NCBI GenBank assembly: GCA_002269645.1
Contig: NIVC01000102.1
Span: 81,950 to 145,949 of the forward strand
Length of the DNA: 64,000 nt
DNA from: Macrostomum lignano
Lineage: Eukaryota
Direction of reading: 5' to 3'
The first letter of the stretch is position 1. Every line of letters begins with the position of its first letter. Both the position numbers and the translations under genes were made by a program. Positions 346-53,310 of the stretch are shown here, piece after piece. The notes under the pieces were generated by a model that did not search any database, was not told the DNA's origin, and saw nothing but the letters and a program-made list of their open reading frames with translations.

Positions 346-511
346 AAAATGAGGATCTGCGATGATCTAAGCTGAGGATCTGGGAAGTTGACTGAGGATC
401 ATAGAATCTATTTAAGGATCTATGAAGCTAGCTGAGAGTTTGAGACGCTACTCGAAAAATTATTTTTAATGTTAAAAAAACCACACAAAACAACCAGAGC
501 CACTCTCTTAC

Positions 512-9952: not shown

Positions 9953-10025
<73 letters not shown>

Positions 10026-18214: not shown

Positions 18215-19476
18215 GCTGTCGTGAGAAGTAGACGGCTTAAACATTTTTGCTATGTGCCTTTTTATCAGGCTTTTTTCTCTGCTTGCCCAGATAAATATTT
18301 ACTCTACTCTGGCTGCATCAAATTTTCGAAACTATTTAAATATGCTCTGAATATCAATTTGGGTGCGCATATTTGAGCACGGCACTCAGTCCAACAGCCA
18401 CCCCCGTGTGCTTTTCATTGTGTGCCACAGCTAGAGAGTACGGCTGTTTTTTATAAGTTTCTCTGAGTACAGCTAGCAAAAGAAAAGTTTGCTTTTATCT
18501 TTGTAAACGCACAAAAAGATGGGTGGGTGAAATTGTTAATACTGCTAAACTGCAATGGCTCTCTTACCCAACGAATGAAATTCTTTATGCGCAGTTTAAC
18601 GCCTTATTCACATTTTTTTTCTAAGTGAGCCTCTTCAACTGCCGATATCTCGAATGTCTTTATACCATCTCTCCCCTATCATCAATCAAATTCCTTCGTA
18701 TAGGTTCATATTTCTCTGTCGCCTATAGTTATTACTGTAACTGGGCAGTGGCTGCTCAAGAGTGTCTCAGCTAAGAGAGAGTTTCTAATTGTCGATTTTT
18801 ATTCACCATGTACGAGCTACACCGCCGCAGGTTGTATTATTTTTGGTTTTTGGCAAAGCAAGGCATTTAAAAAAACTCAACTCAAAAGACCTAGCTCTCC
18901 TCAAAACTCGACCTCGAAGCTTAATTTACCTTCGTTCCTTTGCTTGCCTTTTTTCTCTGTGATGTTCACCCGACGTACATGGCTATATGTGGGGTCCACT
19001 GTAAGTTGATTAAGGGCTTAAGTATAGGACTGTCGACTCAAAAACTCAAAATCTTGATGCCGTCTTTTTATATTTATAGTTTATAGTTTCACTATAGAAA
19101 ATTTAAATACCATTTGCTAGCCAGTTAAACAAAAAATCGACATTTCCGAGTAGGCCGAGAGTATACTGAAGCACGAATTTAAACAAATTGAATAAGTATC
19201 GTTTTCATGCTGCTGAGCATGGTAAAAACGTTAAAATTTAATGAAAAACAAAGCAAAATAATGAGTGAAATAGTGGAAAAGTTCTTACTTGGCTTAAAAA
19301 ATTATTTTTTTTCGCTGCACACGAATGCACTTTTAAAAATTTTTAAATTTATAGAAACGAACCGAAGATTATGAATCTATCATGAAGTTTTCAGCTGCTA
19401 AAATTATTGATTAAATTATTGATTAAATCAGATTTATCCAGGTGGTTCAGATGAATCATTTTGGCGCCTGTAGTCA

Positions 19477-21350: not shown

Positions 21351-22052
21351 GTCAATTGGCTTTTGTTTGTTTGTTTTTTGTTTTTGCAACCGCTGAAAAC
21401 GACAGAGGAAACTTGAAGTCGCAAGCTCACTAGAAAGCACACCTGGTCCACGGATATATACACGAAAATTAAGTCTAGCTAGGTAGGGGGCGGGGGTAGA
21501 AATAATATCAGTAAATAGTTTAGTTTCAGTTTTCATAACCCTACGAAGTGTGTACGCGGTTGTTTCTGGACCAGATCGAGCTCAATAAGAGACAGCAGAA
21601 GAGGGGTACAATATGGCCAGTTCTCACCCTAGCTAAGCTGCACGTTGAATATAATATCAGAGAGAGAACTATAGAGAGTGTACTCACAAAGGCTCAAAGT
21701 CTTGCGGAAGAAAGTAGAATGTAGAGACAAGCCAGAGGGGTTTATTAGAGATTTATAATAAGTATTGTGTATTGTAACGCTTGCAACTCGACTAGAATAA
21801 AAATAAGAAAGTTTTTATGTATTACCTGCCCTATTAGAGCGTTACTGGCTTCAGCTATGTAGTCATGTACATTCTCAGGAGAAAAACAAAGAAACAGAAA
21901 GCCAGATATAATAGTAAAGCTTTTAATCGAACCGAAAAAAATGCCGATTTATTTAATGAACTTGACTATTGAAATCAACAATTGGAAATATAAAAAGGCT
22001 TATTTTTTCTTAGAGGGCGCGCGCACACCGTCCAAGCTACACAGATTATTCA

Positions 22053-23122
22053 TTACTCCTTCTTCTGCAGCTCAGCCTGAACGTCACGCCAGAGTTTGGC
22101 AAAGCCGATCATTTCTAGACCGCGATCCTGCAGACGCTTGGAAATGACCGCCAGAATGTTGACCTCTTCGGGTGTCAGGTTGTGCTCTGCCGGGTTGAGC
22201 TTGGCAAGCTCCTCGCAGCCAACAGCCTCGGACTCGTCGTGAACCAGATAGAACAGCTGGACCGCTCTGGTTGGCAGGAGGTCCTTGTCCGTGGTGGCGT
22301 TGATTTCCATGATTTTCATGAACGAGACGAAATCGTTCTGGCCCAGACTGCGACTTCCTCCCATGGTGGCGAGCTTGTGCATGTTCTGCGAATTTAGAGT
22401 GAGAGTCGGGAGCAAATGTGAATTGCAGGGGTATAAGGCTTACGGGGAATTGCAGAGATTACACTGCTTACGGAGGGGTTGCTAAGATGTCACGGCTTAC
22501 GGAGGTGTTGCTAAGATGTCACGGCTTACGGAGGGGTTGCTAAGATGTCACGGCTTACGGAGGGGTTGCTAAGATGTCACGGCTTACGGAGGGGTTGCTA
22601 AGATGTCACGGCTTACGGAGGGGTTGCTAACTAAGATGTCACGGCTTACGGAGGGGTTGCTAACTAAGATGTCACGGCTTACGGAGGGGTTGCTAAGATG
22701 TCACGGCTTACGGAGGGGTTGCTAAGATGTCACGGCTTACGGAGGGGGTTGCTAACTAAGATGTCACGGCTTACGGAGGGGTTGCTAAGATGTCACGGCT
22801 TACGGAGGGGGTTGCTAACTAAGATGTCATGGCTTACGGAGGGGGTTGCTAACTAAGATGTCACGGCTTACGGAGGGGTTGCTAAGATGTCACGGCGAGA
22901 GTGGGTATTGCCGAGACGCAAGGGCTTATGGGAGCGTTGATAGCTAGTCTGGCGCTAAAAAGGATTAAAAAATAGACTAACTCAAACTCTTACCTCAAAC
23001 TCAGAGTCGCCCATGTCTGGAAAACTTGTTCGCAGAGCCGAGGCCATCTCGTCCGGACTGATGGATCCGTCGCGGTCTTCGTCAAGCTTCTGGAAAACTT
23101 CGATATACTTGTCGTCGGACAT
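22053..23122 (-). CDS. EF-hand protein C, 153 aa, only EF1 canonical. Exons 23122-22994 and 22385-22053
   Basis: MSDDKYIEVFQKLDEDRDGSISPDEM...EFE|NMHKL; phase-0 GAG|GTAAGA donor and TTCGCAG acceptor; C-terminal half aligns with gene B. Confidence 0.87.
22480..22895. repeat. 29-bp minisatellite (GGAGGGGTTGCTAAGATGTCACGGCTTAC), some units with a +4 CTAA, intron of gene C
   Basis: Period 29 (22501 to 22530). Confidence 0.95.
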
Positions 23123-23225
23123 GATGCAGTGACGAGACACTTGGTTGACTACGAGACAGTTGAAAAGTTGATCAGAATGGCTTGTTGGCACTTGAGTGGC
23201 TTGCAGTCTTGAGTAGGGGTGCCAC

Positions 23226-23233
23226 TATTTATA
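23226..23233 (-). promoter_or_regulatory. Candidate TATA box (TATAAATA) of EF-hand gene C
   Basis: Consensus TATA about 105 bp upstream of the ATG on the minus strand. Confidence 0.5.
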
Positions 23234-23734
23234 GAGCAAAAATATCAATGGCTACTACTCACAGAGACGGTCAGATGGATTTGATTTTCACCCCCCCCCT
23301 TAAGCCACTCCGACAAAGTTTTCTAATTGGGTGCCAGAAGTTTTGAGTGCCGTCACAGACAGCCTTATATAGAAGTCGACTTTACAAATTGCTACCAAAG
23401 TCAAAGCACAAGTGAGACTTGACTATTCCAGTGTATGGCTGAGACTTAGGGGTGGGGCTAAAAAAATTACAGACGCGGGAGAATTTTTATCTCCGCTCAT
23501 CACCTTTCAGTGTATTAACCTGCTAGCTGAACTTTGTCAACAAAAATTATTGTAACACTTATTATGGTTTTACTTTATTTATCATTCAGGTGTTTGTATT
23601 GTTCAAGCTTCATGCACATATGATGCTATGTCATTTGTGACTCGGCTACCAAAGGACTTCCATCAACTGGTTGGCGATCAGGATGACTCGTAGGGCGCAG
23701 CCTGGGGCGCTCTGTCCTTGGTTTTAAAAAATAT

Positions 23735-25003
23735 GGCACCCCTTATAGTATAGCCTGGCGCCCCTTATAGTATAGCCTTGGCGCCCCTTATAGTGTAGCC
23801 TTGGCGCCCCTTATAGTGTCTTGGCGCCTCTTATAGTACAGCCTTGGCGCCCCTTATAGTGTCTTGGCGCCTCTTATAGTACAGCCTTGGCGCCCCTTAT
23901 AGTGTCTTGGCGCCTCTTATAGTACAGCCTTGGCGCCCCTTATAGTATAGCCTTGGCGCCGCTTATAGTGTAGCCTTGGCGCCCCTTATAGTATCTTCGC
24001 GCCCCTTATAGTATCTTGGCGCCCCTTATAGTATAGCCTTGGCGCCGCCTATAGTATAGCCCTGGTGCCGCTTATAGTATAGCCTTGGCGCCGCCTATAG
24101 TATAGCCCTGGTGCCGCTTATAGTATAGCCTTGGCTCCCCTTATAGTGTCTTGGCGCCTCTTATAGTACAGCCTTGGCGCCCCTTATAGTGTCTTGGCGC
24201 CTCTTATAGTACAGCCTTGGCGCCCCTTATAGTATAGCCTTGGCGCCCCTTATAGTGTAGCCTTGGCGCCCCTTATAGTATCTTCGCGCCCCTTATAGTA
24301 TAGCCTTGGCGCCCCTTATAGTGTAGCCTTGGCGCCCCTTATAGTATCTTCGCGCCCCTTATAGTATCTTGGCACCCCTTATAGTGTAGCCTTGGCGCCC
24401 CTTATAGTGTAGCCTTGGCGCGCCTTATAGTATAGCCTTGGCGCTCCTTATTGTATAGCCTTGGCGCCCCTTATAGTATAGCCTTGGCGCCCCTTATAGT
24501 ATAGCCTTGGCGCCCCTTATAGTATAGCCTTGGCGCCCCTTATAGTATAGCCTTGGCGCCCCTTATAGTATAGCCTTGGCGCCTCTAATAGTGTAGCCTT
24601 GGCGCCCCTTATAGTGTAGCCTTGGCGCCTCTTATAGTGTAGCCTTGGCGCCCCTTATAGTGTAGCCTTGGCGCCCCTTATAGTATAGCCTTGGCGCCCC
24701 TTATAGTGTAGCCTTGGCGCCCCTTATAGTGTAGCCTTGGCGCCGCTTATAGTATAGCCTTGGCGCCGCTTATAGTATAGCCTTGGCGCCCCTTATAGTG
24801 TAGCCTTGGCGCCCCTTATAGTATAGCCTTGGCGCCGCATACGCATATAGCATAGCCTTGGCGCCCCTTATAGTATAGCCTTGGCGCCCTCCCACCAGTG
24901 CTGGCACCCTTTAGCCAATTGGCGCCCCCCGGTGCTGGCGCCCCCCGGTGCTGGCGCCCCCCGGTGCTGGCGCCCCCCGGTGCTGGCGCCCCCCGGTGCT
25001 GGC
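23735..25003. repeat. 23-bp minisatellite (GCCTTGGCGCCCCTTATAGTATA) followed by a 16-bp array (GGCGCCCCCCGGTGCT)
   Basis: Direct reading; the 16-mer runs ~24921-25003. Confidence 0.95.
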
Positions 25004-25800
25004 AATCGACGCAATTCGACAAGTGATAAGCATTTACGCATGCTCGCGGTTCCAATTCACACGTTATTTATACTTTATCGATGCCATTGTTAAAGCTCTT
25101 GTCATGTGACAGTTCGAGTATTGGTTGGGAAACTATACTGTTTTTTAGTGAAGAAACATTTCGACTGCAGACACTTTCAGAAGGTCTACATTGAGCTTGC
25201 CGTTAAAGTCGCTCCAGACATGAACCCCAGCATCGCAAGTATCAATTGCCCAGCAGAATGGCTGAACTGTTGCGGTTCCTACACCTGATACTGAAACAGA
25301 TAATGATATAGATACGGATACTCGTTTACTGATACTTTCGATACATAGTTTCTGTCGCGTGATCCCAGTTTTGTTAGCTGTTGCAGAAATACAAAACGTT
25401 TCTATATTTAAATTTAGCTCGTACAAACATACAATACTTTACGTCAGCTACATCTTTGAAAATTACGATGGAATAATTTTTAACTTTTATAAAGCTTGAT
25501 TAGCGTAGTTTTGCAAATTTCGACGACTTACGAGTAATTGCTTCATTTTGAATCAATTTGTGAGAGATAAATTTTTCATGGAACTGAAAATAATAAAGTC
25601 CCAAACACTACCGACGCAGTTTAAAAAGAGATTTGAGTCGACTAATTCGAAATGCCATCTTTTATTTCAGCTACTACGATTTAACAGTTCAAGCGCAAGA
25701 AATTAATATTTAGGGGTATAAAAACACTGATTTGAAGGATCTGACGGCAAGACAAAAGTTGTTCAACAGAAGACTAGCGGCTCTCCAGGGCCAGAGGTCT

Positions 25801-26022
25801 CTACTCGCTGCGGGATGCCTCGACAGATTGCATGAAGGCCACGAACTCGTCCACGTCCAGGCACTCCTTGTCGCCTTTCATCGCCAGCAGATTCTCCATC
25901 TCGGAGTCGTCCATCTCGCCGAAGGCGCTGCGCAGAGCTGTCCGCAGCTCGTCGGAGCTGATGGCGCCGTTGCCATCCTCGTCGAACTGCTGGAAGGCTT
26001 CGCGGTACTTGTCGTCGGACAT
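25801..26022 (-). CDS. Small EF-hand protein D, 73 aa (~8 kDa), single lobe, no intron in the CDS
   Basis: MSDDKYREAFQQFDEDGNGAISSDELRTALRSAFGEMDDSEMENLLAMKGDKECLDVDEFVAFMQSVEASRSE-stop; start context CATCATGTCCGACGACAAGTA is identical to gene C. Confidence 0.87.
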   Translation of the reverse strand: MSDDKYREAFQQFDEDGNGAISSDELRTALRSAFGEMDDSEMENLLAMKGDKECLDVDEFVAFMQSVEASRSE

Positions 26023-27352
26023 GATGAGCTCTGCTTGTTTGTCTTGGCGGATGAAAATAGGACTTGCAGAAGTAACAACACTTGTAACGTGTTTCAATTG
26101 GCGCTTGTGATGTCTGACTGGTTGCAGGCAAATTAAACTAACTTATATACTCGTATTTTTTCATTTGTTTCTCTCGCTCTTTCTATTGTGCCCTCTAATT
26201 CCACGGAGGCTTTGACTTGAAGGCTGCTAAGGCGTGAGTTTTGTACACTCTTGTCCAGTCACGTGCCTATATCGTACATTTTGAGTTAGAAAAAGGGGCA
26301 CAGGGTAAGAAGATAAGGCGCATCTAAAATGAGTCAGTCACCACCAACCCCACCCCTAACCCACCGACCCCCACCCCCACTTTAACCTCTGGTTCTCGCT
26401 TATGATTGGTTGGAGAAATCTGCTATATTACCCAGTGAGTGCAATGTGAACTCTTGTTTCTATTTTTGTAGCTAAATGAATACTGTGCACCAGAAAGAGT
26501 ATCTGTAATGCAAAAACATAAACTAATTGACAGATATTAGGGTCATTTCAATGAAATTTATGAAGTTATTTACCAAGCACTAGATTTTGTTTAAATCCAC
26601 TCTCTGTTTAAAAATAACGGTATTCACACACATGTTGCACGCATTTTTATTTAAAAAAACTCTCTGAATCTAACAGTTAGTGACATATTAAAGTTTCCAG
26701 CCCGGAAATTAGGACAATTTTCTATGAAACCTGGGTGAAAATGGACTTAAATGACGTCTGTTTGGATTACGTACCGCATACGAAAGCGCTAGCTCGTACC
26801 CCATCAGAAAAGCAATCACCAACTCTTGTGATGCTTATTTATAGAATAGTGGAAAATTGCAAGCGGGAAATAGTTGAATCTGTTCTCTTTCATTGTGAAA
26901 ATAGGACTTGGTTGACATAAAAAGAGCAGAAAGCAGAAAATCCTCATAAATAAAAAACTGCTTGCTTTGCTCTGTTCATTGCCTTTTTTACCTCTAAATA
27001 TAGATTTGAACAATATTTCATTGTTTCGACTGCCATGGGTACTGTACATATTTAGAAACAGGCAATGAGAAGTAAAGAGTGCTGGTGTTTCTATAGTACA
27101 TCAAAGTAAAACGCCGCATTAAAGTCAGCAATCGAAACTGCTTTGAAGTCATAGCGATTGAATATCTGGGAGTCTTGAAAAGAGACAAAAGAGACTCGAA
27201 CTACTCAAAAATAGATTGCTTTTAAGCTTCACTAACAAATCAAATCTTTTGTGAAAAAACAATTGGCTGCAAAAAAGTCCTTCAGTTTTAGAAACTGCCC
27301 TAGCTGGTGCATAAATATATGCCTCCGGAAACCACTATTGTTGCAGACAAGC

Positions 27353-36670: not shown

Positions 36671-37559
36671 AATTAAGTTTCTAAAGATATTCAGAAAAAC
36701 GCTTTTTCTAACATATCTTCTTTTTAAGAAATCGGATTCACGTTGGTGAGAATATTCTTTATTGATCGAAGAATTTCATAGAAAAAGAACTTTTAGAATC
36801 TTAGAACAAAACTACATGCCCCCAACGATACAGCAAGCTTAAGTTTCCCCGATCCCGCGACCTTCAAGCTCATTTCTAAAAAAAATTCACGGAATCCTTG
36901 TCCTAGATCTAGATGTCTAGGTTGAGCTGTCCATGAATGCGGGGAGCTCTGCCCATAGCTAATTTCCTGTTGGATGGAGGCTGCGGGAGCCAACAGGGAA
37001 TCAGGGAAGCTGTGTGCCTGCATAGGACTTACAGGCACATAAATATAAACTAATTCTAGAAACTGACCCTCCGGAACTTCATCGCGGAAATTCAATCTGA
37101 CTTTATGCCTGTATATTTCTTTGGTATTGATCGATACAGCTGTTGTCAGACTGACTGAGGAAATACGTCTAGCATAAGACTAACCAGAAATGGGTGAGTA
37201 TGATATCAACCAGCTGTTTATCTGTCAGAATTTTACATTGCAGAAGAATATTCCCTGTTTGTCTGCATTTTTTTGAAATTTAAAAATGCTACTTAAGGAA
37301 GTAGAAGTTTCGGCTTTTATAAAAGTAAAAAAACTTGACTGAAAGCAAAAATCTTGGCTTCCCCGAAAGCAGAAAGCTTGGCTTGTCTGAGGATATCTTG
37401 ACTTCCCTAAAAACAGAAACCTTGGCTTTTCTAGAAGCAGAAATCTTGGCTTTCCTGAAAGCAGAAATCTGTCAGAACGTTGAAATGCTTGTGCATCTCA
37501 CGAAAGCAGAAAGTTTGCTCATCCAGAAAAACTCGCGATCCTTAAACTAAACAGCGGAA

Positions 37560-37626
37560 ATGCTTGGCTATTTAAAACGCCGGTTGTCTCACGGAGATCT
37601 GCAAGGCGAGGCTGCTTTTAGTAGAG

Positions 37627-37657
<31 letters not shown>

Positions 37658-40600
37658 GGAGCAGCAGCCCAAGCAGCCACAGAAGCGATGCAGCCACGCT
37701 GGGATTGCCGGTCACTGCAGCGGTCAGCCTCACGAGCAGCGCACAGAGCAGCTGCAGCAGCATCATCATAGACACAAACTCTCCACTGGCAGCGGCAGCA
37801 GTGTGCTCTCAGCCGCCAGAGACATTCTCGAGAACAGTCTTCACGGCAGCTGGAGTCACCATCTAAATCTGCATCACCATGGCGACAGGTGCAAGATGCT
37901 ACTGGTGATTGACGATTCGCAAACTAATTGGTAAATAACTTGCGCTCTGCTAGTAAAATATTTACACGCATTTCAGTAGGACATCAGCTACTAACGAGGA
38001 TACCAATGCTCTATTTATACTGATCTTTTTTAAATTTCAGGTCGAAATACTTTCACCATAAGCGGTGTCCCAACGGTCTGGATATCAAAGTTGAACAGGT
38101 GAGTGAAGTTTCACTTTGACCGAACACAGGTCTGCTTAGACAAGGGGGTAAAGGGGGGCCAAAGGGGGCTGGTACCCCTGGTGCTAAAGCCCCTGGTGCT
38201 AAAGCCCCTTGGTGCTTAAGCCCTTGTTGCTAAAGCCCCTGGTGCTAAAGCCCCTTGGTGCTTAAGCCCTTGTTGCTAAAGCCCCTTGGTGCTAAAGCCG
38301 CTGGTGCTAAAGCCCCTGGTGCTATAGCCGCTGCTGCTAAAGCCCTATGCAAAGACGTCCTGACTTCGTCTCCAAACCCGCAATGCCCATTTTCAAGACT
38401 TAATATAGCACAATTTCCTGGAATCGCAGGCCCCACTCAGCCAGATAAACATTTCCGTGGCCTCCAACGGTCCCGCTGAAGTGATCCTGGACCGTCATCA
38501 GTCTGCCAGTCTGCGATCGGAGAACGACATTGCCTCCATGATTCAGTGAGTAGGTGTACGCTGTACACTCTAAATGACTTCGTGTGTCCGTAAGTGTACG
38601 CATCCTACTTGACCGCTTGTCCCCTCACACTGGCTGCAACTCGTCTGCTGCTAAATTCGACCAACTGTTACTAGCAACAATTTCTCACTGTCCAGCGAAT
38701 CGAAAATTAAAAATATGCAAATTGGAGGGCAATTTTCGTGTTCCACGAAATTGGTTGCTTGGCTGCAAATCGAATTGGAATTCTGGCTGATCTGAAAATT
38801 CGAGTTTACATCCCCTCATAACTTCCCCGTTACTTCCGCGTGTTTAACTCTGAAACGAGTGTTTATCAAAACTATTTTTTAAGGAAGTTCAATTCCTTTG
38901 GAGGGGCATTGTTGCCAATTCTGTCATTTAGTATGTAATGTAGAAACTCTGTGCCTTAGGGTTGAATGCCTGCTTCACATCACGTGATCCAAACCGACTC
39001 TCAGCCTCACTGATCAATCCTGCATCATCAGATAACTAACAACTCACCTGCGCAGGCCTTTCCGTCCGAATTTCGCCCTGCTGCTGCAGCCACCGCTGGG
39101 TCCCGAATGGCGTTCTATTCTGATTGGCCTAGACCGCGCGAATGTACCCTGCATCAACCAATCGCTGAGCGTGTACAACTTCTCAGACAGAGGCTGGGTT
39201 GTAAGCGAATTTTTGTAGCCTTTTCCATTCTACTTAACTTTTAAGTGGCTATTTTTTTCGAGGAAAGGGTTTCCTAATTGTTTTATCCTTGATTAATTCA
39301 TACAAGTAAAATTCCCGCTCCGCAGTATAACAACTTGGCGCGAATTCAAAAACGTTTGGGAGACAACTATTTTCCGTTAATTGAACAGGCGTTTTATTCA
39401 AATTGGCGCAAGCAGGTAAGAAAAAAATTACCTGTATGTTCTTCATCTTGTTCAATAGTAAAATAAAAAAAAATTTTCTCAATAAAATAAAATAAAATAA
39501 AATAAAATAAACAATTTTTCAGGCGTTAAGCAACCAAAAAGCCACCTATCCGTTATTGCTCAAGTCTGGCAACCGTCACGGTAACTTTGGAAAGGTACAG
39601 TTAAGAGGAATTAAATTTCAAGATATGAAACAGTCTTTGAAATAATTCAAACTATCAAACTGACTTCAGATCATTGCAAATAATGCGGAAGAGATGTCGA
39701 ACTTTGCTGCTTTCGCTGCGGCTGGAGGAACATCTTATGAACATAAGTGGGGCACAGCCGAGGCTGCTCTCGGAGCGAGCAACGAAATTATTGTGCAAAA
39801 AGTTGACAAAAACTATTGGGCGTTCGCGTGAGCTGAAGAATGAATGGCTTTGATGTGGCTAAAAATTTCTCTAAGTGGTTTTGTGTCCTGGTATCTTCTT
39901 GTCTTTGTGTCTCAGCGTCTTAGTGTCTTGGTGTCGTGGTGTCTTCTTGTCCTGAGTGTTTTCTTGTCTTTGTGTCTCAGCGTCTTAGTGTCTTGGTGTC
40001 GTGGTGTCTTCTTGTCCTGAGTGTTTTCTTGTCCTGGTGTCTTCGCGACTTAGTGTCTTAGTGTCTCAGCGTCTTAGTGTCTTGGTGTCGTGGTGTCTTC
40101 TTGTCCTGGTGTCTTCGCGACTTAGTGTCTTAGTGTCTCAGCGTCTTAGTGTCTTGGTGTCGTGGTGTCTTCTTGTCCTGAGTGTTTTCTTGTCCTGGTG
40201 TCTTCGCGACTTAGTGTCTTAGTGTCTCAGCGTCTTAGTGTCTTGGTGTCGTGGTGTCTTCTTGTCCTGGTGTCTTCGCGACTTAGTGTCTTAGTGTCTC
40301 AATGTCTTAGTGTCTTGGTGTCGTGGTGTCTTCTTGTCCTGGTGTCTTCGCGACTTAGTGTCTTAGTGTCTCAATGTCTTAGTGTCTTGGTGTCGTGGTG
40401 TCTTCTTGTCCTGGTGTCTTCGCGACTTAGTGTCTTATCGTTTCAGTATCTCAGTGTCATAGTGTCTTCTTGTTTTAGTGCTTTCTCGGCTTAGCGCTTA
40501 ATGTATCAGTGTTTTAGTACCTTATACGAGCGTAATTGGTGTCTTGATGTCTTATTGTCTTTGTGTCTCGCAGTGTCTTAGTGACTTTTTTAGTGTCTTC

Positions 40601-42369
40601 CTTGGTGTATCAGTGTCTTACGTAGTTACCGTGACGGCAAATCTCAATGTCTCAAACACTGAGACACCAAGGCACGAAGACACGAAGACACTAAGTCTGT
40701 CATAGTGTGTCTGTCGGTATGCCTTATTTCTTCATTTCTCAATTCTAGTAAAGCTTTCGCAATTAGCCAAATTGGGAAATTTATGATTAATTTTAGTCGA
40801 CGCACATCAAAAGTTGGTTTAAAAGACGGTCCAGTGGAGAAACTTCCCGTAACGGACAGGTAAGAATTGTGAGTGACTGAGCATTCTTATCACTACCAGC
40901 AAAGAATCAAACTGCTTTTCTCTCCGGGAAATCCAGGCTGCGCAGCTGGACTGAAGCGATTTCTGACCACTTTGGCGGACTGGACATTTGCTCGTTGGAG
41001 GCCGTGCAATGGAGCGAGGATGACGTGCAAATTGTTGATGTAAGTGCCGTTAATTTTGGCGATATGTTGTGCGCTTTCAATGGTGAGCTGATCATACGAG
41101 CGTATTGTTTGAATCTCTGATATTATTAAAGCTGATAAAACCCTATAATCTGTCATCTTGAGCCTATTTTACATTCTAAAGTGAGGCGTGCTTATCAATT
41201 TCTAAGTTATGTGCGGTTAAATATCTTTAAAGATGCTACAAGTTTTCTTGATAGCTCGCAATGAGGCAAAGATGCCTTTAAAGATGTTGATACAGTTCCT
41301 TCAATTAGGATGTTGCCAAATTGCCTTCAAGGATGTCGCCAAATTGCTTTCAAGGATGTTGCCAAATTGCTTTCAAGGATGTTTCCAAATTGCTTTCAAG
41401 GATGTTGCCAAATTTCTTTCAAGGATGTTGCCAAATTTCTTTCAAGGATGTCGCCAAATTGCTTTCAAGGATGTCGCCAAATTGCTTTCAAGGATGTCGC
41501 CAAATTGCTTTCAAGGATGTTGCCAAATTTCTTTCAAGGATGTCGCCAAATTGCTTTCAAGGATGTTTCCAAATTGCTTTCAAGGATGTCGCCAAATTGC
41601 TTTCAAGGATGTTTCCAAATTGCTTTCAAGGATGTTGCCAAATTTCTTTCAAGGATGTCGCCAAATTGCTTTCAAGGATGTTGCCAAATTGCTTTCAAGG
41701 ATGTTGCCAAATTTCTTTCAAGGATGTCGCCAAATTGCTTTCAAGGATGTTGCCAAATTGCTTTCAAGGATGTTGCCAAATTGCTTTCAAGGATGTCGCC
41801 AAATTGCTTTCAAGGATGTCGCCAAATTGCTTTCAAGGATGTCGCCAAATTGCTTTCAAGGATGTCGCCAAATTGCTTTCAAGGATGTCGCCAAATTGCT
41901 TTCAAGGATGTTGCCAAATTGCTTTTAAACACGACTCTACAATAGTTCTTTCGATAATTTTGCAAAACTTCCTTCAAGGATGCAGAGAACGTTTAACGAA
42001 TCTCACCAAAACAAGAATTGGGATATTTACACTCCAACTAATTTACTTTGTTCTCACGCCTGTCTCATTCAATCCTCCAAGGCTCACGGCTCAGAATCAC
42101 TGCAGCTGGTGCTTGATGAGGCGTCCAAATTCTGTCCAGACGAGGCTGACAGCATCAGGCGCAGCGTGGCGGAGCTGACTCTGGCTCGAATGTCGGCCGC
42201 GCCATCGTCCAACTCAGCTCATTGCGACAATCAGCTGCCAGCTCAACCGATAGTCGTCAAATCGCCCCTGGCAGATGGTCAGCATCCGGTCAAAACAAAC
42301 GAAGATTCGAAAGAGCCGGATGCGATCCAGAGTCTTAGGCGCACCTTTGCTGGGATTTTTGGAGACTAA
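37560..42369 (+). CDS. Syn: Synapsin (divergent), 487 aa. Exons 37560-37930, 38041-38098, 38430-38545, 39056-39200, 39326-39415, 39523-39594, 39670-39827, 40797-40859, 40937-41039, 42082-42369
   Basis: A-domain YLKRRLS (PKA site). C-domain motifs CKMLLVIDD..TNWSKYF, DIKVEQ, PFRPNF, VPCINQSLSVYNFSDRGWV, RIQKRLGDNYFPLIEQAFY, YPLLLK, VQK, FGGLDIC. E-domain SLRRTFAGIFGD. Nine GT-AG introns in compatible phases; total 1464 nt. Confidence 0.95.
38170..38345. repeat. ~15-17-bp repeat (GGTGCTAAAGCCCCT), synapsin intron 2
   Basis: Direct reading. Confidence 0.85.
39885..40620. repeat. 72-bp repeat built of GTGTCTT sub-units, synapsin intron 7
   Basis: TCTTCGCGAC recurs at 40201, 40273 and 40345. Confidence 0.9.
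41300..41925. repeat. 23-bp minisatellite (GCTTTCAAGGATGTCGCCAAATT), synapsin intron 9
   Basis: Period 23 (41461 to 41484). Confidence 0.96.
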
Positions 42370-44698: not shown

Positions 44699-46341
44699 TC
44701 ACTTCAGTGATGGAGCGGCTACCGCTCGCATTCGAACCAGCGAGGGTCTACGACGATTCCAGCTCGAGTTGGACGGCTGCTGGTTAGTCGGCTGCTCGGG
44801 CTGCTGCTGCTGTTGCAAGTCCTGCTCGCTAGAGGAGTTCGAACTATCCGCGGCGATTTCGTACACGTAGCTACATGTTGGTGGATTAATGCGTTTTAAT
44901 GCGTGTGTTTAATGCGAGTGGAGTGTGGTAGATGGTGGTGTTACGCATTCGATGCTGTCAGATTCAGGCCAGAGTGAACCCAGAGTGACACCAGTTTGAC
45001 ACTAGAGTAACATTAGAGTGATAAACGAGTGAAACGAGTAACATCGGAATGACGAAAGAGTAGCACTTGAGTATCATCAGCTTTAATTAGAGAAAAGAGG
45101 AACTTTAATTAAAGGGAAGGGACAAAAGGCGACTGTGGAAGATTGCTTATACAAAAAGAGTGACACTAGAGTGACTCCACTACACAAGATCACAACCAGC
45201 TACCAGAGTGACAACAGAGAGGCATTAAAGTAACACCAGAGTGACTTTAGAGTGACAACGGAAGGACCCTACCTGAAGTTCAGTAAAGTGAGTAAATACA
45301 GTACCTGGTACATCAGAGTGATAAGAGTGACCCACTAGATTAATACGAGGTTGACACCAGAAGGACCCAACAGAGAGTGACAATATATTGACACTAGTTT
45401 GACATCAGAGTGACACCAGAGTGACATAAAAAGGGAATAAGATTGACATTAGAAGGGCACCAGATTGATCAGCAGGATTTCTAACAGAAAGATGCTGTAA
45501 TTGACATCATGAGCGATGCCTAAACTATTTTTTGATATTACTAAAATAGCTCGGTCGTAGCATGCAAGCTCGTCAAAAAAAGATTGAACTCTATTACTGT
45601 ACAGTGTCATACGCAAAGTGTAAAACTAGTTTCAACAAGGCAAAGCACTTACTTAAGTCCGTCGTTATTTTTGGATGAAGCTGGCGAGCTCGAGTACATG
45701 CCCTTGTCCAGACTGATGCCTTCCAGACTCATCGCCTTCAGCTCTTCGTCCATCATGGCGAACACGGACACGAGAAGCTCGGGATTCTTCTGGAACTCGG
45801 GCTCCAGAAGGTTGTTGCGCTCCAGTCGGTCCTGCCAGTGCGGCGGCAAGTCGACGAACTTTCCGCTGTTTCGGTCGTAGGTCAGGCTCAGCAGCTCCTT
45901 GGGCGGCGTTAGCGGCTTCTCGTTGGCCGACTGATCCGCTGAAGTTGGCGTCTTCGGACTGGTTGCCATGGAAACGCCGGAATCGTCTGTTCTAACAGCG
46001 CCAGGTGGGGTCTCCGCCTCGACAGCTTCGGTGAGAGTCTCTGCAAAGGAGTGGCTATCAGCGGGACCAAAGTAGGACCTCCAGTGCTCCGGAATGCCAC
46101 TGAACGACTGTCGCCCAGCGTCGAAAGTGATATGCAGAACACGACGGACGTTCTGCGGCGTCGAGATGGTGTTCGCCGTGGTGGCGGAGCCGCTTTCCTC
46201 AGTCGGACAGACGGTTGCATTGTTAGAGCTAGTGCTGCTGGTGCTGGTAGTGCGCTGACTCGACTTGCTTGTCCGACGGCTTTTGAATAGCGAAGCGAGC
46301 GACTCCTTCATGCTGTCCAGTTTCTGGTTGAATGTCGACAT
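44699..46341 (-). CDS. Kinase-less PAK-like protein with two tandem PBD/autoinhibitory modules, 286 aa. Exons 46341-45653 and 44870-44699
   Basis: Exon 1 has ISTPQNVRRVLHITFDAGRQSFSGIPEHW and LTYDRNSGKFVDLPPHWQDRLERNNLLEPEFQKNPELLVSV, both aligning to the PAK/STE20 PBD. Phase-2 donor AA|GTAAGT and acceptor ATGTAG|C; exon 2 encodes a Q-rich tail with RRRPS, then TGA. Confidence 0.78.
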
Positions 46342-47524
46342 TTTGATTGCGGCACAATGTCAGGGGCTATTGCTGGTTGTCAGTTTGGTAGGTTTTCTGT
46401 ATGAGGTTATTGCTGATTGTGGTTTGTGGCCGAGAGTGAGTGGGTGTAACTCCCGCTTTACTATCAAATCTGATCATGGGGGTTGGTGGGGTCGCGGGGG
46501 GAATGTACACCTTGGCTGAGTGAGCTTTGACTTGATTGGCTCGGAATGATCCAGTTGTGCGCAGAACCTGCGCGATGAAAATAATTGCATTTGGAAGTAC
46601 ATGTAAATTATTAAAAAGCTGTGAAATACACTTATAAAGCCTACGATCGCGTGCACGAAGCTAATTTGCTAGAAAAAAGTAACAAAATTTTCCATAGCTG
46701 GTCGTTGCGCCACATTGCCATGCCAAGCTGAGGGTTTCTAGATGCTATGATAATTTACACAGCTAGATTTGTGCACCTTCACTACGTAGCAGCTGTGTTG
46801 AAGAAGGAATGTGCGTTTATTTCGCATATTTATGCAGCAAAATTCGCACTCTGTTGAATGACGTTTCTTAGTTTATAACTCTCTCTCCCTCTCGGAATTG
46901 CCGGCGCAGCTTTTTATCGTTTCGAAATATGTATCATTCATATCATTTCACAGTCACCACCTACCCATTGCATCAATACATGTAGTGTCCATCCGAATTA
47001 ATTTCTGACTTTCAAAGCTTCACGTTTACACTTGTCGTCGCATAGCGCAATTTTTGTAGGGGTAGTGCACACATGTACGCACACACATGCGCTGGAATCG
47101 ACTGCTGCGCAAATCAGTATGCAGCAGGGCGTTTTATATTTTGCTTCTACAGTACGCTCGTAGCATACGACCGGTCTGCGAGACTGCAATTATGAGGAGC
47201 ATACTAGCAATCTTCGCCCCCCGTTGGGGGACATCTGTTCTCTGTTCTCTACATCTGAATCTCTGTTCTCTACAAGTAACAAAAAGATAGCGAAATAAAG
47301 CCTTCACAAAGAAAACAGACAAAATACTAAAATGAAGTGCAATGCTAAAAGAAATCATCCCAAGACAGCAAGCATCCCCCAGATAGCAAGCATCCCCCGG
47401 ATAGCAAGCATCCACCAGATAGCAAGCATCCACCAGAAAAAAAGTAGCTAGTGCGACAATTTCCTTAGCATTATAGCGGCTCCTTTAAAATTAGCTTACT
47501 TTTACGTTTGAAATTGTGTATCTT

Positions 47525-48630
47525 TTATGTTTGACATGGTGGCTCTTTAATGTTTGACATGGTGGCTCTTTTATGTTGACATGGTGGCTCTTTTATGTTC
47601 TACATGGTAACTCTTTTATGTTTGATACGGTGGCTTTTCAATGTCTGACATGGTGGCTCTTTTATGTTGACATGGTGGCTCTTTTATGTTCTACATGGTA
47701 ACTCTTTTATGTTTGACATGGTGGCTCTTCTATGTTTGACAAAGTGGCTTTTTAATGTTTGACATGGTGGCACTTTTATGTTTGACATGGTGGCTCTTTA
47801 ATGTTCGAAGTGGTGGCTCTTTAATGTTTGACATGGTAGCTCTTTTATGTTCGACATTGTGGCTCTTTTATGTTCGACATGGTGGCTCTTTTAGGTTTGA
47901 CATGGTGGCTCTTTAATGTTTCACATGATAGCTCTTTCATGTTCGAAATGGCGGCTCTTCAATGTTCGAAATGGTGGCTCTTTTATGTTTGACATGGTGG
48001 CTCTTTAATTTTTGACATAAAGTCACTTATATGTTTGACATAAAGTCACTTATATGTTTGACATAAAGTCACCTATATGTTTGACATGGTGGCTCTTAAA
48101 TGTTTTACAATGTGGCTCTTTTATGTTAGACATGGTGGCTCTTTTAGGTTTGACATGGTCACACTTTTATGTTTTGACATGGTGCCTCTTTAATGTTTGA
48201 CATGGTGGCTCTTTAATGTTTGACATGGTGGCTCTTTAATGTTTGACATGGTGGCTCTTTAATGTTTGACATGGTGGCTCTTTAATGTTTGACATGGTGG
48301 CTCTTTAATGTTTGACATGGTGGCTCTTTAATGTTTGACATGGTGGCTCTTTTATGTTCAACATACTAGCTCATTTATGTTCGACATGGTGGCTCTTTTA
48401 GGTTTGACATGGTGGCTCTTTAATGTTCGAAATGGTGGCTCTTTAATGTTTGACATGGTGGCTCTTTAATGTTTGACATGGTGGCTCTTTAATGTTTGAC
48501 ATGGTGGCTCTTTAATGTTTGACATGGTGGCTCTTTAATGTTTGACATGGTGGCTCTTTAATGTTTGACATGGTGGCTCTTTAATGTTTGACATGATAGC
48601 TCTTTCATGTTCGATATGGTGGCTCTTGAC
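47525..48630. repeat. 23-bp minisatellite (GTTTGACATGGTGGCTCTTTAAT)
   Basis: Period 23 (48241 to 48264). Confidence 0.95.
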
Positions 48631-48644
48631 ATTTGTCAATGTTA

Positions 48645-49150
48645 TATTTGGGGTGGCCAGCGCTGGCTGCATTTATGCATTTTGTTTAGGGGGGCTAGCG
48701 CTGGCTACATTTGTGCATTATGTTTTGGGTGGCTAGCGCTGGCTACATTTGTGCATTATGTTTGGGGTGGCCAGCGCTGGCTGCATTTATGCATTATGTT
48801 TGGGGTGGCCAGCGCTGGCTACACTTGTGCATTATGTTTTGGGTGGCCAGCGCTGGCTACACTTGTGCATTATGTTTTGGGTGGCCAGCGCTGGCTACAC
48901 TTGTGCATTATGTTTGGGGTAGCCAGCGCTGGCTACACTTGTGCATTATGTTTGGGGTGGCCAGCGCTGGCTACACTTGTGCATTATGTTTGGGGTGGCC
49001 AGCGCTGGCTACACTTGTGCATTATGTTTTGGGTGGCCAGCGCTGGCTACACTTGTGCATTATGTTTTGGGTGGCCAGCGCTGGCTACACTTGTGCATTA
49101 TGTTTGGGGTGGCCAGTGCTGGCTACACTTGTGCATTATGTTGTGCATTA
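48645..49150. repeat. 38-bp minisatellite with a 12-bp palindromic core GCCAGCGCTGGC
   Basis: Period 38 (48901 to 48939); no unique spacers. Confidence 0.95.
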
Positions 49151-49359: not shown

Positions 49360-52300
49360 TACTTACTTACTTACTTACTACTGACGGGGGGGGGCGCAGG
49401 CGCCGCGAATAGGCCGCGAGGCCCCTATCGCAACCCCAAGGTAAAAGAGCACAAGGATTAACCTTGGGGGTGCGCCCAGTCCCCGCCAGTAGTCGGCAGG
49501 TTCGCAGTGGAGGCATCGGCGACCCTCATCCGGCCAGAGTCCCGGACGAAGGCGCGCAGGTCACGGATATTGTCCGGGGTGGTCAGCTCGTCCATCCGCT
49601 GGGGGTGGCCGAGGTATTTGTGCCGCGCCTTGTTGAAGTAAGGGCAGAAGGTGACGTGATGCTCCGCGGTCTCCTCTCCTATGCCACAGAAAGGACAGGT
49701 GGGAGGGCAGCCGGTTTGCAACGATATATGTCTCTGCAAGAATCCATGGCCGGTTAGGACCATGCACATCTCCCTGAGGTCGGTTCTGTTAAGCGAAATC
49801 AGATAATCAGAGACTTTCCTGTTCAGGTTAGGCATGGCAGAGCGGCTCTGCCTGTACTCGGTGCAGCTGTTCCAGTGGAGCTGGTGCTGCTGATGGAGCC
49901 ACCTGTTGATATGGCGGGTGACTTGCGACCTGGGAGTGGGTAGCCTCATCAGACGGTGGTTGCTGCCCTCCTTGGCGAGAGAGTCCGCGAGCTCGTTGCC
50001 CAAGATGTTGCTGTGACCAGGTGTCCAGATAATTCTAATCCTGTTAAGGACTGAGAGAGATTGCACACTGCGGTGGCATTGGGATACTGTAGCAGCGGAG
50101 ATATTCTCAGTGGTTAAGGCCTTAATAGCAGCTTGGCTATCAGTGTAGAAATTAATGTCAAAGTTATTAATGTTCGCCTGAAGCAGTTGCTGGGCACACT
50201 GCTCAATGGCGCAAATTTCAGCTTGGAAAACTGAGGTGTTCTCACCGAGGTGCAGACTTTCCTGGAAAAGCATCTTACCCTCGTGGAAAATGGCAATACC
50301 CGCTCCAGCGCGGCCGTTGAACAGCGAGCCGTCGGTGAAGCAGTGAATGCCCTGGCTGCGCCGGTTCACACCGACATCCAGCGGAATATTGTCTCGGCCA
50401 GGGATGGCGGTCTTGAAGCCCCTCCTGATGTTGAGGGCGGGAGGTCGACTATCCACATTGCCCAGGTCCATGTGGATGTTGTTGAGGTCGCGGCGGACAA
50501 AATCCATATGCGGGATTAATGTTTTCATTGGCATAAAGCCAGAGGGTGCGTTATTTAACGTTTTATCTCTGATAAGCCGGGAGGCAGACTTCATAGCCTC
50601 CGCCCTAATGAATAGGTGAAGCGGAGGCAGGTTAAGGATAGTGTTCAGCCCCTCGTAGGGGGTAGACGGGTACGCACCTGTGATGGCACGGCAAATGCTG
50701 CCCTGAAGCTGGTACAGGCGCTGACGGGCGGTCTTCTGCTCCAGCACGCTAGTCCAGATGAGACTCGCGTATGTGATACTGGGCCGGATGATGCCGGTGT
50801 AAATCCAACGGACCGTTCTAGGCGAGAGGCCCCAAGTCGGCCCGATGGCTCTGCGCAGCTGGGCAAAGCAGCGTTTTGCCCGACCGATGACGTTATCAAG
50901 GTGCTTCGTCCAGCGCAGGTCATGCGTTAGCGTCACACCGAGGTATTTGACCTACTTCTTGAAGGGGATGTTTCTGCCATAGACGGTGAGGTTTTTCATC
51001 TCCCACGCACGGCGCTTGGGAAAACGACAGCGACAGTCTTGGTGACGCTGATATTTAGGCCATGCTGCGTAGCCCAGTCGGCCGCCTTGTCGGCGAATTG
51101 CTGCATCAGGTTGCGCAGAGTGGCGGGGTCGGGTCCGCTGACGACCGCGGCAACGTCATCGGCGTAGCCCGCCCTGGTGATACTGCTGGGAATGTCAGCG
51201 GTTAGAAGTTCGTCCATGACGAGATTCCAAAGAAGTGGAGTTAGCACGCCACCTTGAGGGCCGCCTTTCATCACCGCTCGGGTGTAGGTAACGCCCATAA
51301 GCGTAGATGTCGCAAACCTATTGCGGATCATAAAATAAATCCAGCGAACAATGCTGTGTCTCACATTCCTGCGGGAAAGAGAGTTTCTGAAGGAGCGGAA
51401 AAGGACATTGTCAAACGCTCCTTCGAAGTCAACAAACATCCCGCAAGCGAGTTGTTTGCTAAGGATGGCACTCTCGATCTTGGAGGTAATGGCATGGAGA
51501 GCATGCTCAGTCGTCTTTCCAGGCTGGAAGGCGTACTGGTACTTACTGACGGCGTCGGAGCGCAGGTCGCACTCTCGAAGCCTCCACAGGATGAGCCTCT
51601 CCATCAGCTTAACACAAAAGGAAGTGAGGCTGATGGGCCGGAAGGATTTCACATTGGTGTAGTCACCCTTGGCGGGTTTCGGGATGAACACGACTCTGGA
51701 CATTCTCCAGATTGTGGGAATGTAACCTGTAGTAAAACAGTCAACAAGCAATTTAGAGAGAGAATCAGCAAAGTTTTGCAGCTTAAGCGCCTCCTGAAGG
51801 ATACAGGGGGCGATATTGTCAGGGCCAGGCGATTTACAATATACGGTTTAAAAGAATTTGCCGCCAGCTGGAGCAGCCGGGGACTGGCGCACTGCTGGAA
51901 AAGCGGACGGTCACAAGGCCTGTGGTCTTCGACCACGTACTCCGGTTCGTCAACCTGCGGAAAGCAGGTGGAGAAAAGAAGATTTAGCGAACCTTCGGTA
52001 CTGGTAGTGTAGTTACCATCTAGGTGCAGAAGGGAGTTACACTGAGAGAGTGTGTCGTGCCTGAGAGTCCTGACCAGCAGGGCTGTGGGGTGTTGCCCTT
52101 CCAGGCTGGCGCAGTAGGCTTTCCAGGTGGTCTTCTTAGCCCTTCGGATAGCACTTTTGTACATCCTCAGAGCAGAGTGGTAGTTCTCCCAATCCTCTGG
52201 GGTATTCGAGCCGTTTGCGAGGCGTTGCAGTCGGCGGGTGTTCTTCTTCATGCGAGTGAGTTGACTCCACCAAGGAGAGTATTTCTTCCTGCAATACAAC

Positions 52301-52975
52301 TTAGGGGCGTTAGCGCGTATGGCGGTGTTTAGGATCTCAACGAGGGAGTTGCACCGATGCTCAATGCCAGGGAGATCCTCGCTGGAGTCCGGTAAATTGG
52401 CTTCGGTTAGGAGTTTTAGCAGGTCTCTTCGGAAACCTGTCCAGTCGGCCTTTTTCAAATTAAGGCGGTCTCGGTTCTCATGACGGGCTCCGACGGAGCT
52501 GATGCTGTACTGGATGTACGAGTGGTCGGAAAGCGATGGAAAGTCATCCCTAACCAGCCAGTTGTGGACCTGATTGAGGGCGTTGTTGGAAACGAGAGTG
52601 AGGTCGATAACCTCACGCCGATTAGAAACAATAAATGTGGGTTTGCTGCCCCTGTTACAAATGTGTAACGAGGAGGAGTTAATGAAATCAATAAGTAAGT
52701 CACCGCGCCTGTTAGTATCGCTACTAGACCAGGCAGTGTTGTGGGCATTAGCATCGCAGCTGACGATTAGCTTCCGGTCCTGGAGGTTACAGAAGTCCGC
52801 CAGTTCCTGCAGGAGGGGGGGAGGGACGTCTTCCTGGATGTCTAGGTAGGCGGAAACGAAGGTCAAGTCAAAGACTGAGAAAGTACACATGTCTTTAGAG
52901 CAAAACATTGGCATAATAGTGGCCGGGAGGTCGTTTTTGACGAGGGCGATTGCCCTGGGGGTGTCGTTCGGTTTA
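49360..52975 (-). mobile_element. 5'-truncated, inactivated non-LTR retrotransposon (APE-RT-RNaseH-CCHC; LOA/I/R1-group-like)
   Basis: APE: CDANAH, IDLTL, SDH. RT: KSPGPD, FRPISL, QYAF, DFEGAFD, GGPQGGVLTPLLW, YADD, KYLG. RNase H: TDGS, FQAE, TDS, WTPGH, GNELAD. CCHC: CPFCG...EHHVTFC. The 3' tail is (TAAG)n at ~49361-49380. Lesions: 5-bp insertion ~51835-51841, 1-bp deletion ~51018-51021, TAG at 50952-50954. Confidence 0.95.
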
Positions 52976-53310
52976 ATTCATTAAAATTCATTAATTTAAG
53001 CGAGACCAAAAAAAGTTCAGACTGAAAAATAAACTTGGAATATCGCGAAATTTGGCCGTTACGTGTACAATGTACACCTCTATCAGTACGATCAGACAGA
53101 GCTTCAGAGTAAGATCTACCTGGATATTCAGTCGCGCTCTGGTGTTCAGAGATAACCTATTTTTCAAGTATTCGTCACCTTTAAAGTCTATCCAGTTTTG
53201 CTTGCGGCATGTTTTCTCACTGACACTGAAGTACGCAATAATAATATTTTTGCACATTTTCTTATCACCGTGCACAAAAATTTTGCCTTTGACTTTTTAT
53301 TTAGGAGAGC

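Follow-up and report, generated by a model that had tools for sequence, protein, structure and literature searches.

Can the regulatory region of a p21-activated kinase (PAK) exist as a gene of its own, without the kinase that it regulates? In group I PAKs, control is exerted by an autoinhibitory domain (AID). The question is raised by Mlig019290, a gene on contig NIVC01000102.1 of the Macrostomum lignano DV1 assembly (GCA_002269645.1), which lies in the 64-kb stretch of DNA analyzed here (the window, to which all coordinates refer). An earlier note, made from the letters of the window, had read it as a kinase-less gene with two PBD modules. This reading is borne out by Pfam, profile-profile comparison, tblastn and identity to an annotated protein: as judged from its sequence, the product is a free-standing, rearranged regulatory region of the group I PAK type that lacks a kinase domain. 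Mlig019290 is an expressed and selectively maintained gene, and its product of 286 aa is mostly disordered.

The whole protein matches the Pfam PBD family (PF00786) with E=9e-12 and 45.6 bits (cut-off 21.3) in two stretches, and PBD is the only domain found in the Pfam scan, which returned no Pkinase match. The two stretches, termed module 1 and module 2 (Table 1), were also scanned individually, and the family profile of each was compared with PAK PBD/AID sequences by hhalign. Module 1 alone reaches 35.4 bits (E=1.4e-8) over profile positions 2-34 of 59, its family profile aligns with PAK1 72-108 (97.9% probability, E=4.8e-13), and among PDB sequences it matches CRIB peptides of PAK1, PAK4 and PAK6. 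It reads I-S-T-P-Q-N-V-R-R-V-L-H-I-T against the CRIB consensus I-S-x-P-x(2-4)-F-x-H-x-x-H-V-G: the Ile, Ser, Pro and second His are present, whereas Phe is replaced by Val, the first His by Arg, Val by Ile and Gly by Thr. In PAK1 numbering, Arg67 stands at the position of H83, His70 at that of H86 and Phe91 at that of L107; the residues that had been assigned to this module (ISxP, Arg for the first His, the second His and Phe at L107) are thus correct. AlphaFold2 (AF2) predicts a hairpin at 72-81 and a helix at 85-90, and the two PAK helices that pack on the kinase are absent. In PAK1, the CRIB (75-90) and the following hairpin and helix bind Cdc42/Rac (PMC11852631, PMC3490965), and binding of Cdc42/Rac by the Val/Arg CRIB of module 1 is plausible. 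Expressed on its own, the fragment PAK1 83-149 is a trans-inhibitor of all group I PAKs, and the exchange L107F abolishes this inhibition (PMC6110733). The Phe of module 1 had been taken, by analogy, as a sign of broken autoinhibition, which reads too much into it: because module 1 lacks the kinase-packing helices and the Phe is invariant in the family, this residue would say little on autoinhibition.

Module 2 represents the other half of the domain. Scanned alone, it yields 21.5 bits (E=3e-4) over profile positions 16-55 of 59, and its family profile aligns with PAK1 82-134 (95.5% probability, E=1.4e-8). In a comparison of this profile with all PDB sequences, the autoinhibitory domain of PAK1 ranks first (1F3M_A, E=4.6e-4), and full-length PAK2 structures come next. 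The ISxP motif and both His are missing, and with them the CRIB, as the earlier note had observed; W169, L173 (=L107), N177 (=N111), E182 (=E116) and K185-N186-P187 (=K119-N120-P121) are retained, and the positions matching PAK1 L107, N111, N120-P121 and V127 are invariant in the family. AF2 places strands at 154-156 and 161-163 and helices at 167-175, 181-184 and 187-210. The profile alignment, the PDB match and the predicted hairpin with three helices agree in identifying module 2 as an inhibitory-switch (IS) domain (PAK1 88-136).

The two modules also align with each other, in register over a hairpin-Trp core (hhalign 90%, E=1.6e-6; BLASTP E=1e-5). They look like copies of one ancestral PBD that have degenerated in complementary ways: duplication of a single PBD followed by complementary loss would be expected to leave two incomplete PBDs that complement each other in coverage and overlap in the middle. 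The split of functions that had been claimed for the gene holds for the sequence halves, a CRIB half and an inhibitory-switch half.

An open reading frame (ORF) of 230 codons is opened by the ATG at 46341 and spans 46341-45649 on the minus strand; its donor, AA/GTAAGT, is canonical and kept in 3/3 genomic copies. The spliced product of 286 aa is identical to the M. lignano protein PAA75406.1 / PAA90854.1 / PAA90862.1 (P0001; 'hypothetical protein BOX15_Mlig019290g1-3', in UniRef 'CRIB domain-containing protein'), so the proposed junction 45653/44870 is exact. The GC content of the coding sequence (CDS) is 57.6% vs 40.7% in the intron. The GenBank annotation of the assembly derives from a genome-guided RNA-seq transcriptome, in which transcript ends were set by trans-splicing and poly(A) reads (PMC5730564); the model is therefore transcript-based evidence that the mRNA terminates without encoding a kinase, as had been anticipated. 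A tblastn search with the PAK1 kinase domain over the whole window gave nothing better than E=2.9, consistent with the earlier statement that no kinase precedes the convergent neighbor, which is indeed synapsin. At the locus of a paralogue, P0002 (L005, 21.5 kb), the best tblastn match to the kinase was E=0.68. The stop codon is kept in all family members.

Three genomic copies (L001, L002 and L003, the first being window 56341-34699 with 100% match) encode the identical protein. Among them, 3/861 CDS columns vary, all synonymous, and indels are absent. Across the intron and 400-nt flanks, 61/1534 ungapped columns vary and 81 columns contain gaps (Fisher p=3e-9 vs the CDS); the intron alone contributes 17 substitution and 24 gap columns, vs 3 and 0 in the CDS. 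This contrast between coding and non-coding sequence indicates that the gene appears to be under purifying selection, irrespective of whether the copies are paralogues or haplotypes.

The breadth of the family was assessed by an exhaustive phmmer search of 1.84 billion representatives and a further search seeded with one of its hits. The former retrieved two further full-length relatives only: P0002 (M. lignano Mlig032438 g1-3, 351 aa, 49% identity) and P0005 (259 aa, 39% identity), which is located on a 990-nt intronless contig (L004, SRA run SRR28338165) with a complete 259-aa ORF, stop codon and AATAAA. P0017, which represents a third paralogue group of M. lignano, and P0018 came from the P0005-seeded search. 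The family thus comprises three paralogue groups of M. lignano and one transcript from outside this species; both modules are kept in all of them except the P0018 model, whereas the linkers drift. Identity to P0001 is 39-69% in module 1, 53-65% in module 2, which is the best-conserved region, and 0-35% in the spacers. In the N-terminal half, the common plan consists of a helix, 'ISTPQxVxRxxH...G.P..W...F' and the PxTPPx[KR] motif; in the C-terminal half, it consists of 'FVxLPPHWxxRLxRNNL...F..NP..L..VF..MDxEL[KR]xM', [YH]SS and a terminal R-S-[LF]-V. The variant CRIB is invariant across the family, as are I59, S60, T61, P62, Q63, V65, R67, H70, G82, P84, W87 and F91 of module 1. Read from the alignments, this conservation shows constraint on both modules. 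In the phmmer search, protist PAKs scored at most about 46 bits and no animal PAK ranked above them; the family therefore did not arise by recent truncation of a resident PAK gene. No comparable protein was retrieved from other flatworms within the sensitivity of a single-sequence search, and the family appears to be lineage-restricted.

Further searches did not extend the family: a search with concatenated modules in a collection of 5.8 billion proteins returned 10 candidates and no true match, and of 442 matches to the family motifs in JGI metagenomes 0 were confirmed. Two initial candidates were dropped, P0003 as a repeat artefact (a 29-fold repeat containing 'LQKNPELL') and P0004 as an unrelated, highly repetitive protein. 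There is no genomic locus on record for P0017. P0018, a UniRef entry from M. lignano labeled 'HTH APSES-type domain-containing protein', is an isoform or model of the P0017 paralogue from which precisely the IS core of module 2 is missing, the sequence continuing at 'ELRKMDL'; if this model is real, alternative splicing would toggle module 2. The P0002 gene has only one intron, located near residue 159 in the linker between the modules, which results in one exon per module (L005 10001-11508). The P0001 intron follows module 2 at codon 230, and a shared intron position was consequently rejected as evidence.

What might such a protein do? The gene is already catalogued as encoding a 'CRIB domain-containing protein', and a PAK-inhibitor function would be read from homology alone; the trans-inhibitor or decoy function put forward in the earlier note is something that we infer. 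Our tentative preference is for a PAK-binding attenuator or buffer that module 1 would address to sites of active Cdc42/Rac. Module 1 would dock on GTP-bound GTPases of the Cdc42/Rac type at membranes, and module 2 would engage the kinase domain of a group I PAK in trans, folding onto its C-lobe as the IS domain of PAK1 does. In this way, the protein would be an endogenous, GTPase-localized attenuator or buffer of PAK, a natural counterpart of the PAK1 83-149 'PID' peptide, and the basophilic site near its C-terminus may be a phosphorylation or feedback site for PAK or an AGC kinase. A PAK-binding attenuator is preferred because module 2 is the best-conserved region, retains the IS core with the L107 equivalent and has no CRIB. 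PAK is the preferred target because its kinase domain is the only established class of partners cited for IS-type domains, save FXR1/FMR1, the binding of which at this region is specific to PAK1 (PMC6110733). In PAK1, most of the contacts to the kinase C-lobe come from the IS domain (88-136), through its helices I-alpha-2 and I-alpha-3, and the kinase-inhibitory (Ki) tail (137-149) fills the active site and pushes the activation loop aside (PMC3490965). Because CRIB and IS domain are located on different modules, GTPase binding would be expected to localize the protein rather than to release its IS domain; the 'GTPase-gated' mode suggested earlier is less likely than localization and was the weakest element of that reading.

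Several points weigh against a PAK-type inhibitor. The claim that module 2 keeps the 'whole inhibitory segment' stands for the IS domain (PAK1 ~88-134) and fails for the Ki tail: no method aligned PAK1 137-149, and neither HMMER nor hhalign placed it on residues 198-218, where it would be located in PAK. This segment contains the invariant residues D198, E200, L201, M204, S217 and S218, and its EL[KR]xM loosely resembles QK141YM (QKYMS) of PAK1, by eye only. The minimal experimental inhibitor, PAK1 83-149, includes the Ki tail. Module 2 alone clears the Pfam cut-off of 21.3 bits by just 0.2 bits. The CRIB of module 1 is atypical, with consensus Phe and first His replaced (Val65, Arg67), and binding of a GTPase to it need not free the separate IS domain. 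The mean pLDDT of the AF2 models is low, 47 for the whole protein and 62 for module 2 alone; the isolated IS domain of PAK1 is unfolded (PMC3490965), and the modest value for module 2 fits with this. The expected hairpin and helix elements of both modules have pLDDT values of 65-75, and the remainder is mostly disordered except for helix 2-20. Foldseek searches with the two AF2 models returned PAK chains exclusively as top matches (1f3m_A, 2ov2, 2odb, 9m41), at E-values of about 1.5, which are not significant, so these matches are no evidence on their own. Finally, the 'three copies' may in part be a product of redundancy of the DV1 assembly, which is caused by extra chromosomes (PMC5730564).

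A generic small effector or adaptor of Cdc42/Rac is a possible, somewhat doubtful alternative to the PAK attenuator. Here, module 1 would bind the GTPase and module 2 would either be an intramolecular switch of the WASP-GBD type, clamping the N-terminal helix or C-terminal tail of the same protein, or bind a partner other than PAK. The Pfam PBD family includes non-kinase effectors, among them the GBD of WASP/N-WASP, and the conserved amphipathic N-terminal helix, the PxxPx[KR] motif and the conserved tail could be ligands or clamped elements. In WASP, a helical module behind the CRIB provides autoinhibition by clamping a helix. Conservation does not extend to the Ki tail, and module 2 is far diverged from any PAK, animal PAKs scoring not above about 46 bits in the exhaustive search. 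Kinase-less CRIB effectors such as BORG/CDC42EP, SPEC/CDC42SE, yeast Gic1/2 and the plant RICs are also small and largely disordered, with CRIB/PBD as the only domain and a basic region nearby, as observed here. On the other hand, the only significant relatives of module 2 among solved structures are the autoinhibitory domains of group I PAKs (1F3M, PAK2 9lbf/9m41) and not WASP or other GBDs; WASP chains are absent among PDB sequence and fold matches, all of which are PAKs. No variation is seen in the NP turn, which is PAK-specific, or at the equivalents of L107 and N111. BORG, SPEC and other effector-family-specific domains are not found in the protein by Pfam, nor are the WH1/EVH1 and VCA regions that WASP possesses. 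To our knowledge, BORG, SPEC, Gic and RIC proteins have a short CRIB only and no IS domain of the PAK type. The SPEC family carries an N-terminal Cys-rich lipidation motif; the N-terminus of the flatworm protein, MSTFNQKLDS..., has no such Cys motif. A kinase-less effector with two CRIBs is known from Dictyostelium (gnrC, PMC8847673).

The second alternative, a decoy or buffer of the GTPases themselves, is improbable. Module 1 would sequester active Cdc42/Rac, with the hairpin and helix of module 2 perhaps as a second low-affinity site, and signaling through all CRIB effectors would be dampened without touching kinases. In length, module 1 equals a complete GTPase-binding peptide of the PAK4/PAK6 type, and the hairpin-Trp element, which touches the switch regions in PAK-GTPase complexes, is kept in both modules. 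A decoy would, however, leave the high conservation of the two C-terminal IS helices and the following segment unexplained, and with its atypical CRIB (Arg for His, Val for Phe), module 1 makes a poor candidate for a high-affinity sponge.

More improbable still is a docking substrate or scaffold of PAK or another basophilic kinase, in which module 2 would dock the kinase and the C-terminal R-x-x-S-[LF]-V would be phosphorylated, such that PAK signaling would be relayed and not inhibited. The core R-S-[LF]-V with an upstream Arg is kept in all family members (RRRPSLV, QRRSLV, RQQRSFV), S273 and V275 being invariant, and group I PAKs prefer substrates with Arg at -2/-3 and hydrophobic residues at +1/+2, which the site of P0001 fits. 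The P0017/P0005 branch (RQQRSFV), however, does not maintain the Arg at -2, the site is compatible with many AGC and CaMK kinases, and binding of the IS domain is inhibitory in every characterized PAK (PMC6110733, PMC3490965). Of the Q-rich tail with an RRRPS site described in the earlier note, both elements are present; the tail is specific to this paralogue, and the site is conserved only as the R-S-[LF]-V core. An annotation artefact, either a mis-annotated 5' fragment of a PAK gene with kinase exons elsewhere or a decaying pseudogene fragment, is hardly credible and nearly excluded by the data: transcription units of M. lignano are polycistronic and trans-spliced (PMC5730564), and the canonical AATAAA is absent within 1.2 kb past the stop codon on the strand of the gene, but the in-frame stop is shared by the three copies and by two further paralogue groups, whose C-termini are homologous, the window is devoid of kinase similarity, the convergent synapsin gene lies 2.3 kb downstream, purifying selection is strong, and a complete ORF is also found on an independent contig from another organism (P0005).

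How does the protein compare with the systems in which its parts are known? By analogy of function, it stands closest to the regulatory region of PAK and to the engineered PID. In group I PAKs (PAK1-3; PBD 67-113, CRIB 75-90, AID 83-149), the CRIB, hairpin and first helix are matched by module 1, and the IS domain with NP turn and the L107 and N111 equivalents by module 2; an upstream basic patch, a PxxP motif and a downstream acidic stretch are likewise shared (PAK limits from PMC11852631, PMC3490965). However, PBD and AID overlap in PAK, whereas the flatworm protein has two separate partial copies about 60-130 residues apart; Phe81 and His83 of the PAK CRIB are replaced by Val and Arg, the Ki tail is unrecognizable, and the protein has no kinase domain and hence is not a PAK. 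The PID (PAK1 83-149) is also kinase-less and contains the IS domain, and all family members carry Leu at the L107 position of module 2; in contrast to the flatworm gene, which is natural, has an additional CRIB module and no demonstrable Ki tail, the PID is engineered and includes the Ki tail. Among the negative modulators of PAK1 listed in a 2025 review (CRIPAK, Merlin, Nischarin, PAK1IP1 and SKIP), none is described there as AID-related (PMC11852631). The pakA of Trichophyton (PMC6274995) was considered as a precedent and rejected, since a kinase freed of its CRIB is the opposite case.

An architectural parallel is provided by protist PAKs with two tandem PBDs (P0007-P0012, from Pharyngomonas, Baffinella, Ancoracysta and others). 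In these, the first PBD is short (CRIB, hairpin and Trp) and the second is complete, including the IS helices; the module order is the same as in the flatworm protein, and Arg replaces the first His in some of the first modules, e.g. ISGPTNVVRELHVGYD, as in the flatworm family. Unlike the flatworm protein, they possess a kinase domain, and the CRIB of their second PBD is intact. Similarity between the two groups is generic for PBDs (E 1e-5 to 1e-3) and does not indicate common descent of the tandem arrangement. Among JGI metagenome entries (P0006/P0015), P0006 comprises six consecutive full PBDs in 422 aa (Pfam E=3e-52) and has no kinase.

No description of Mlig019290, of this architecture or of a natural stand-alone AID protein was found in the literature, the coverage of which was not exhaustive; Mlig019290 and Mlig032438 are absent from the supplements of two M. 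lignano expression studies. Taken as a whole, the proposal of a macrostomid family of natural stand-alone PAK autoinhibitory-domain proteins, which arose by duplication and complementary degeneration of one PBD, are recruited to active Cdc42/Rac by a separate, variant CRIB and act in trans by clamping the kinase domains of group I PAKs, is rather unlikely to hold in every part. If module 2 does clamp PAK kinase domains, evolution has used the stand-alone autoinhibitory-domain solution, and GTPase binding and kinase inhibition would reside on two separately mutable modules in an animal that is amenable to RNAi and transgenesis. If it does not, the protein would be another lineage-restricted CRIB effector and a clean case of duplication and complementary degeneration within one protein.

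Table 1. Features of the Mlig019290 copy in the window (residue numbers refer to the 286-aa product)
Feature	Position	Strand	Description
Whole gene	44699-46341	-	861-nt CDS, two exons, 286 aa; from ORF and identity to P0001
Exon 1	45653-46341	-	Codons 1-229 plus 2 nt; holds both PBD modules
N-terminal amphipathic helix (predicted)	46282-46338	-	Residues 2-20, KLDSMKESLASLF; then basic patch KSRRTSK
Module 1	46066-46173	-	Residues 57-92: variant CRIB ISTPQNVRRVLHITFD, beta-hairpin, short helix PEHWRSYF; corresponds to PAK1 72-108
Proline motif PLTPPK	45898-45915	-	Residues 143-148; fits PxxPx[K/R]; candidate SH3 ligand or proline-directed phosphorylation site
Module 2	45742-45900	-	Residues 148-200: CRIB-less IS domain, beta-hairpin and three helices; corresponds to PAK1 82-134
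Segment after IS domain	45688-45750	-	Residues 198-218, DEELKAMSLEG...MYSS; position of the PAK Ki tail
Intron	44871-45652	-	782 nt, GT...AG ends, degenerate 11-nt repeats
Exon 2	44699-44870	-	Codons 230-286 and stop codon 44701-44699; acceptor ...TGTAG/C
Acidic Ser-rich stretch	44819-44869	-	Residues 231-247, YVYEIAADSSNSSSEQD; predicted disordered
C-terminal candidate basophilic phosphorylation site	44735-44755	-	Residues 269-275, RRRPSLV; RRRPS = 44755-44741

From N- to C-terminus, the protein is composed of the helix with its basic patch, module 1, the PxxPxK motif, module 2, the acidic Ser-rich stretch and the RRxS[L/F]V site. The N-terminal helix 2-20 is predicted by AF2 with a pLDDT of about 70; the N-terminus shares 13/22 residues with P0002, and A16 and S17 are invariant in the family. 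The proline motif P-x-T-P-P-x-[KR] is found in 4/4 family members (PPTPPPR, PPTPPSR, PPTPPPR, PLTPPK). The acidic stretch is common to P0001 and P0002 (YVFQIEADKSNSSSESD) and in part to P0017. Between 44975 and 45425, the intron contains eight degenerate units similar to GTCACTCTGGTGTCA with an 11-nt period; a 15-nt pattern, GTCACTCTGGTGTCA, spanning this repeat has 8/8 of its matches in the window inside the intron of the gene and none elsewhere, with 0.04 expected by chance.

The synapsin gene extends from 37551 to 42366 on the plus strand and is recognizable by an N-terminal 'MLGYLKRRLSHGD', Synapsin_C exon matches at 39293-39463 and 40881-41117, and a C-terminal 'SLRRTFAGIFGD', the stop codon of which ends at 42366. 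Colinear similarity to synapsin exons on the opposite strand is also seen at the P0002 locus (L005 11509-21508), where a TIMP/NTR gene follows about 9 kb downstream; since synapsin is convergent at both loci, its pairing (and that of TIMP) with the PBD gene predates the P0001/P0002 duplication. In other animals, it is a conserved feature that TIMP genes lie nested within synapsin genes. Long ORF-like tandem arrays at 39844-40491 and 41221-42175 (plus strand), e.g. repeated 'CFQGCRQIAFKDVAKLLSRM', are located between the Synapsin_C exons and the last synapsin exon and are presumably intronic minisatellites.

Just upstream of the 5' region of the PBD gene, tandem arrays occupy 47499-48627 (23-bp unit x49) and 48642-49142 (38-bp unit x13); they might be relevant to the promoter or a mere sign of a repeat-rich genome. 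A non-LTR retrotransposon is located 3 kb upstream of the gene (49461-52977, minus strand); its endonuclease (51652-52977), reverse transcriptase (50999-51847) and RNase H (49461-50951) are in different frames, so that it is interrupted. On the same strand, a cluster of EF-hand (calmodulin-like) gene fragments spans 16721-26142; the pieces scanned with Pfam were 16721-17047 (EF-hand_1 E=1.6e-26) and 25804-26142, and ORFs of similar appearance are found at 19480-19884 and 22985-23224. The beginning of the window (1-10500) is characterized by extreme GC and AT skew, with long low-complexity arrays at 5228-5997, 6081-8020 and 8821-10421, and contains a weak fragment of an AMP-binding enzyme at 3050-3907 on the minus strand.

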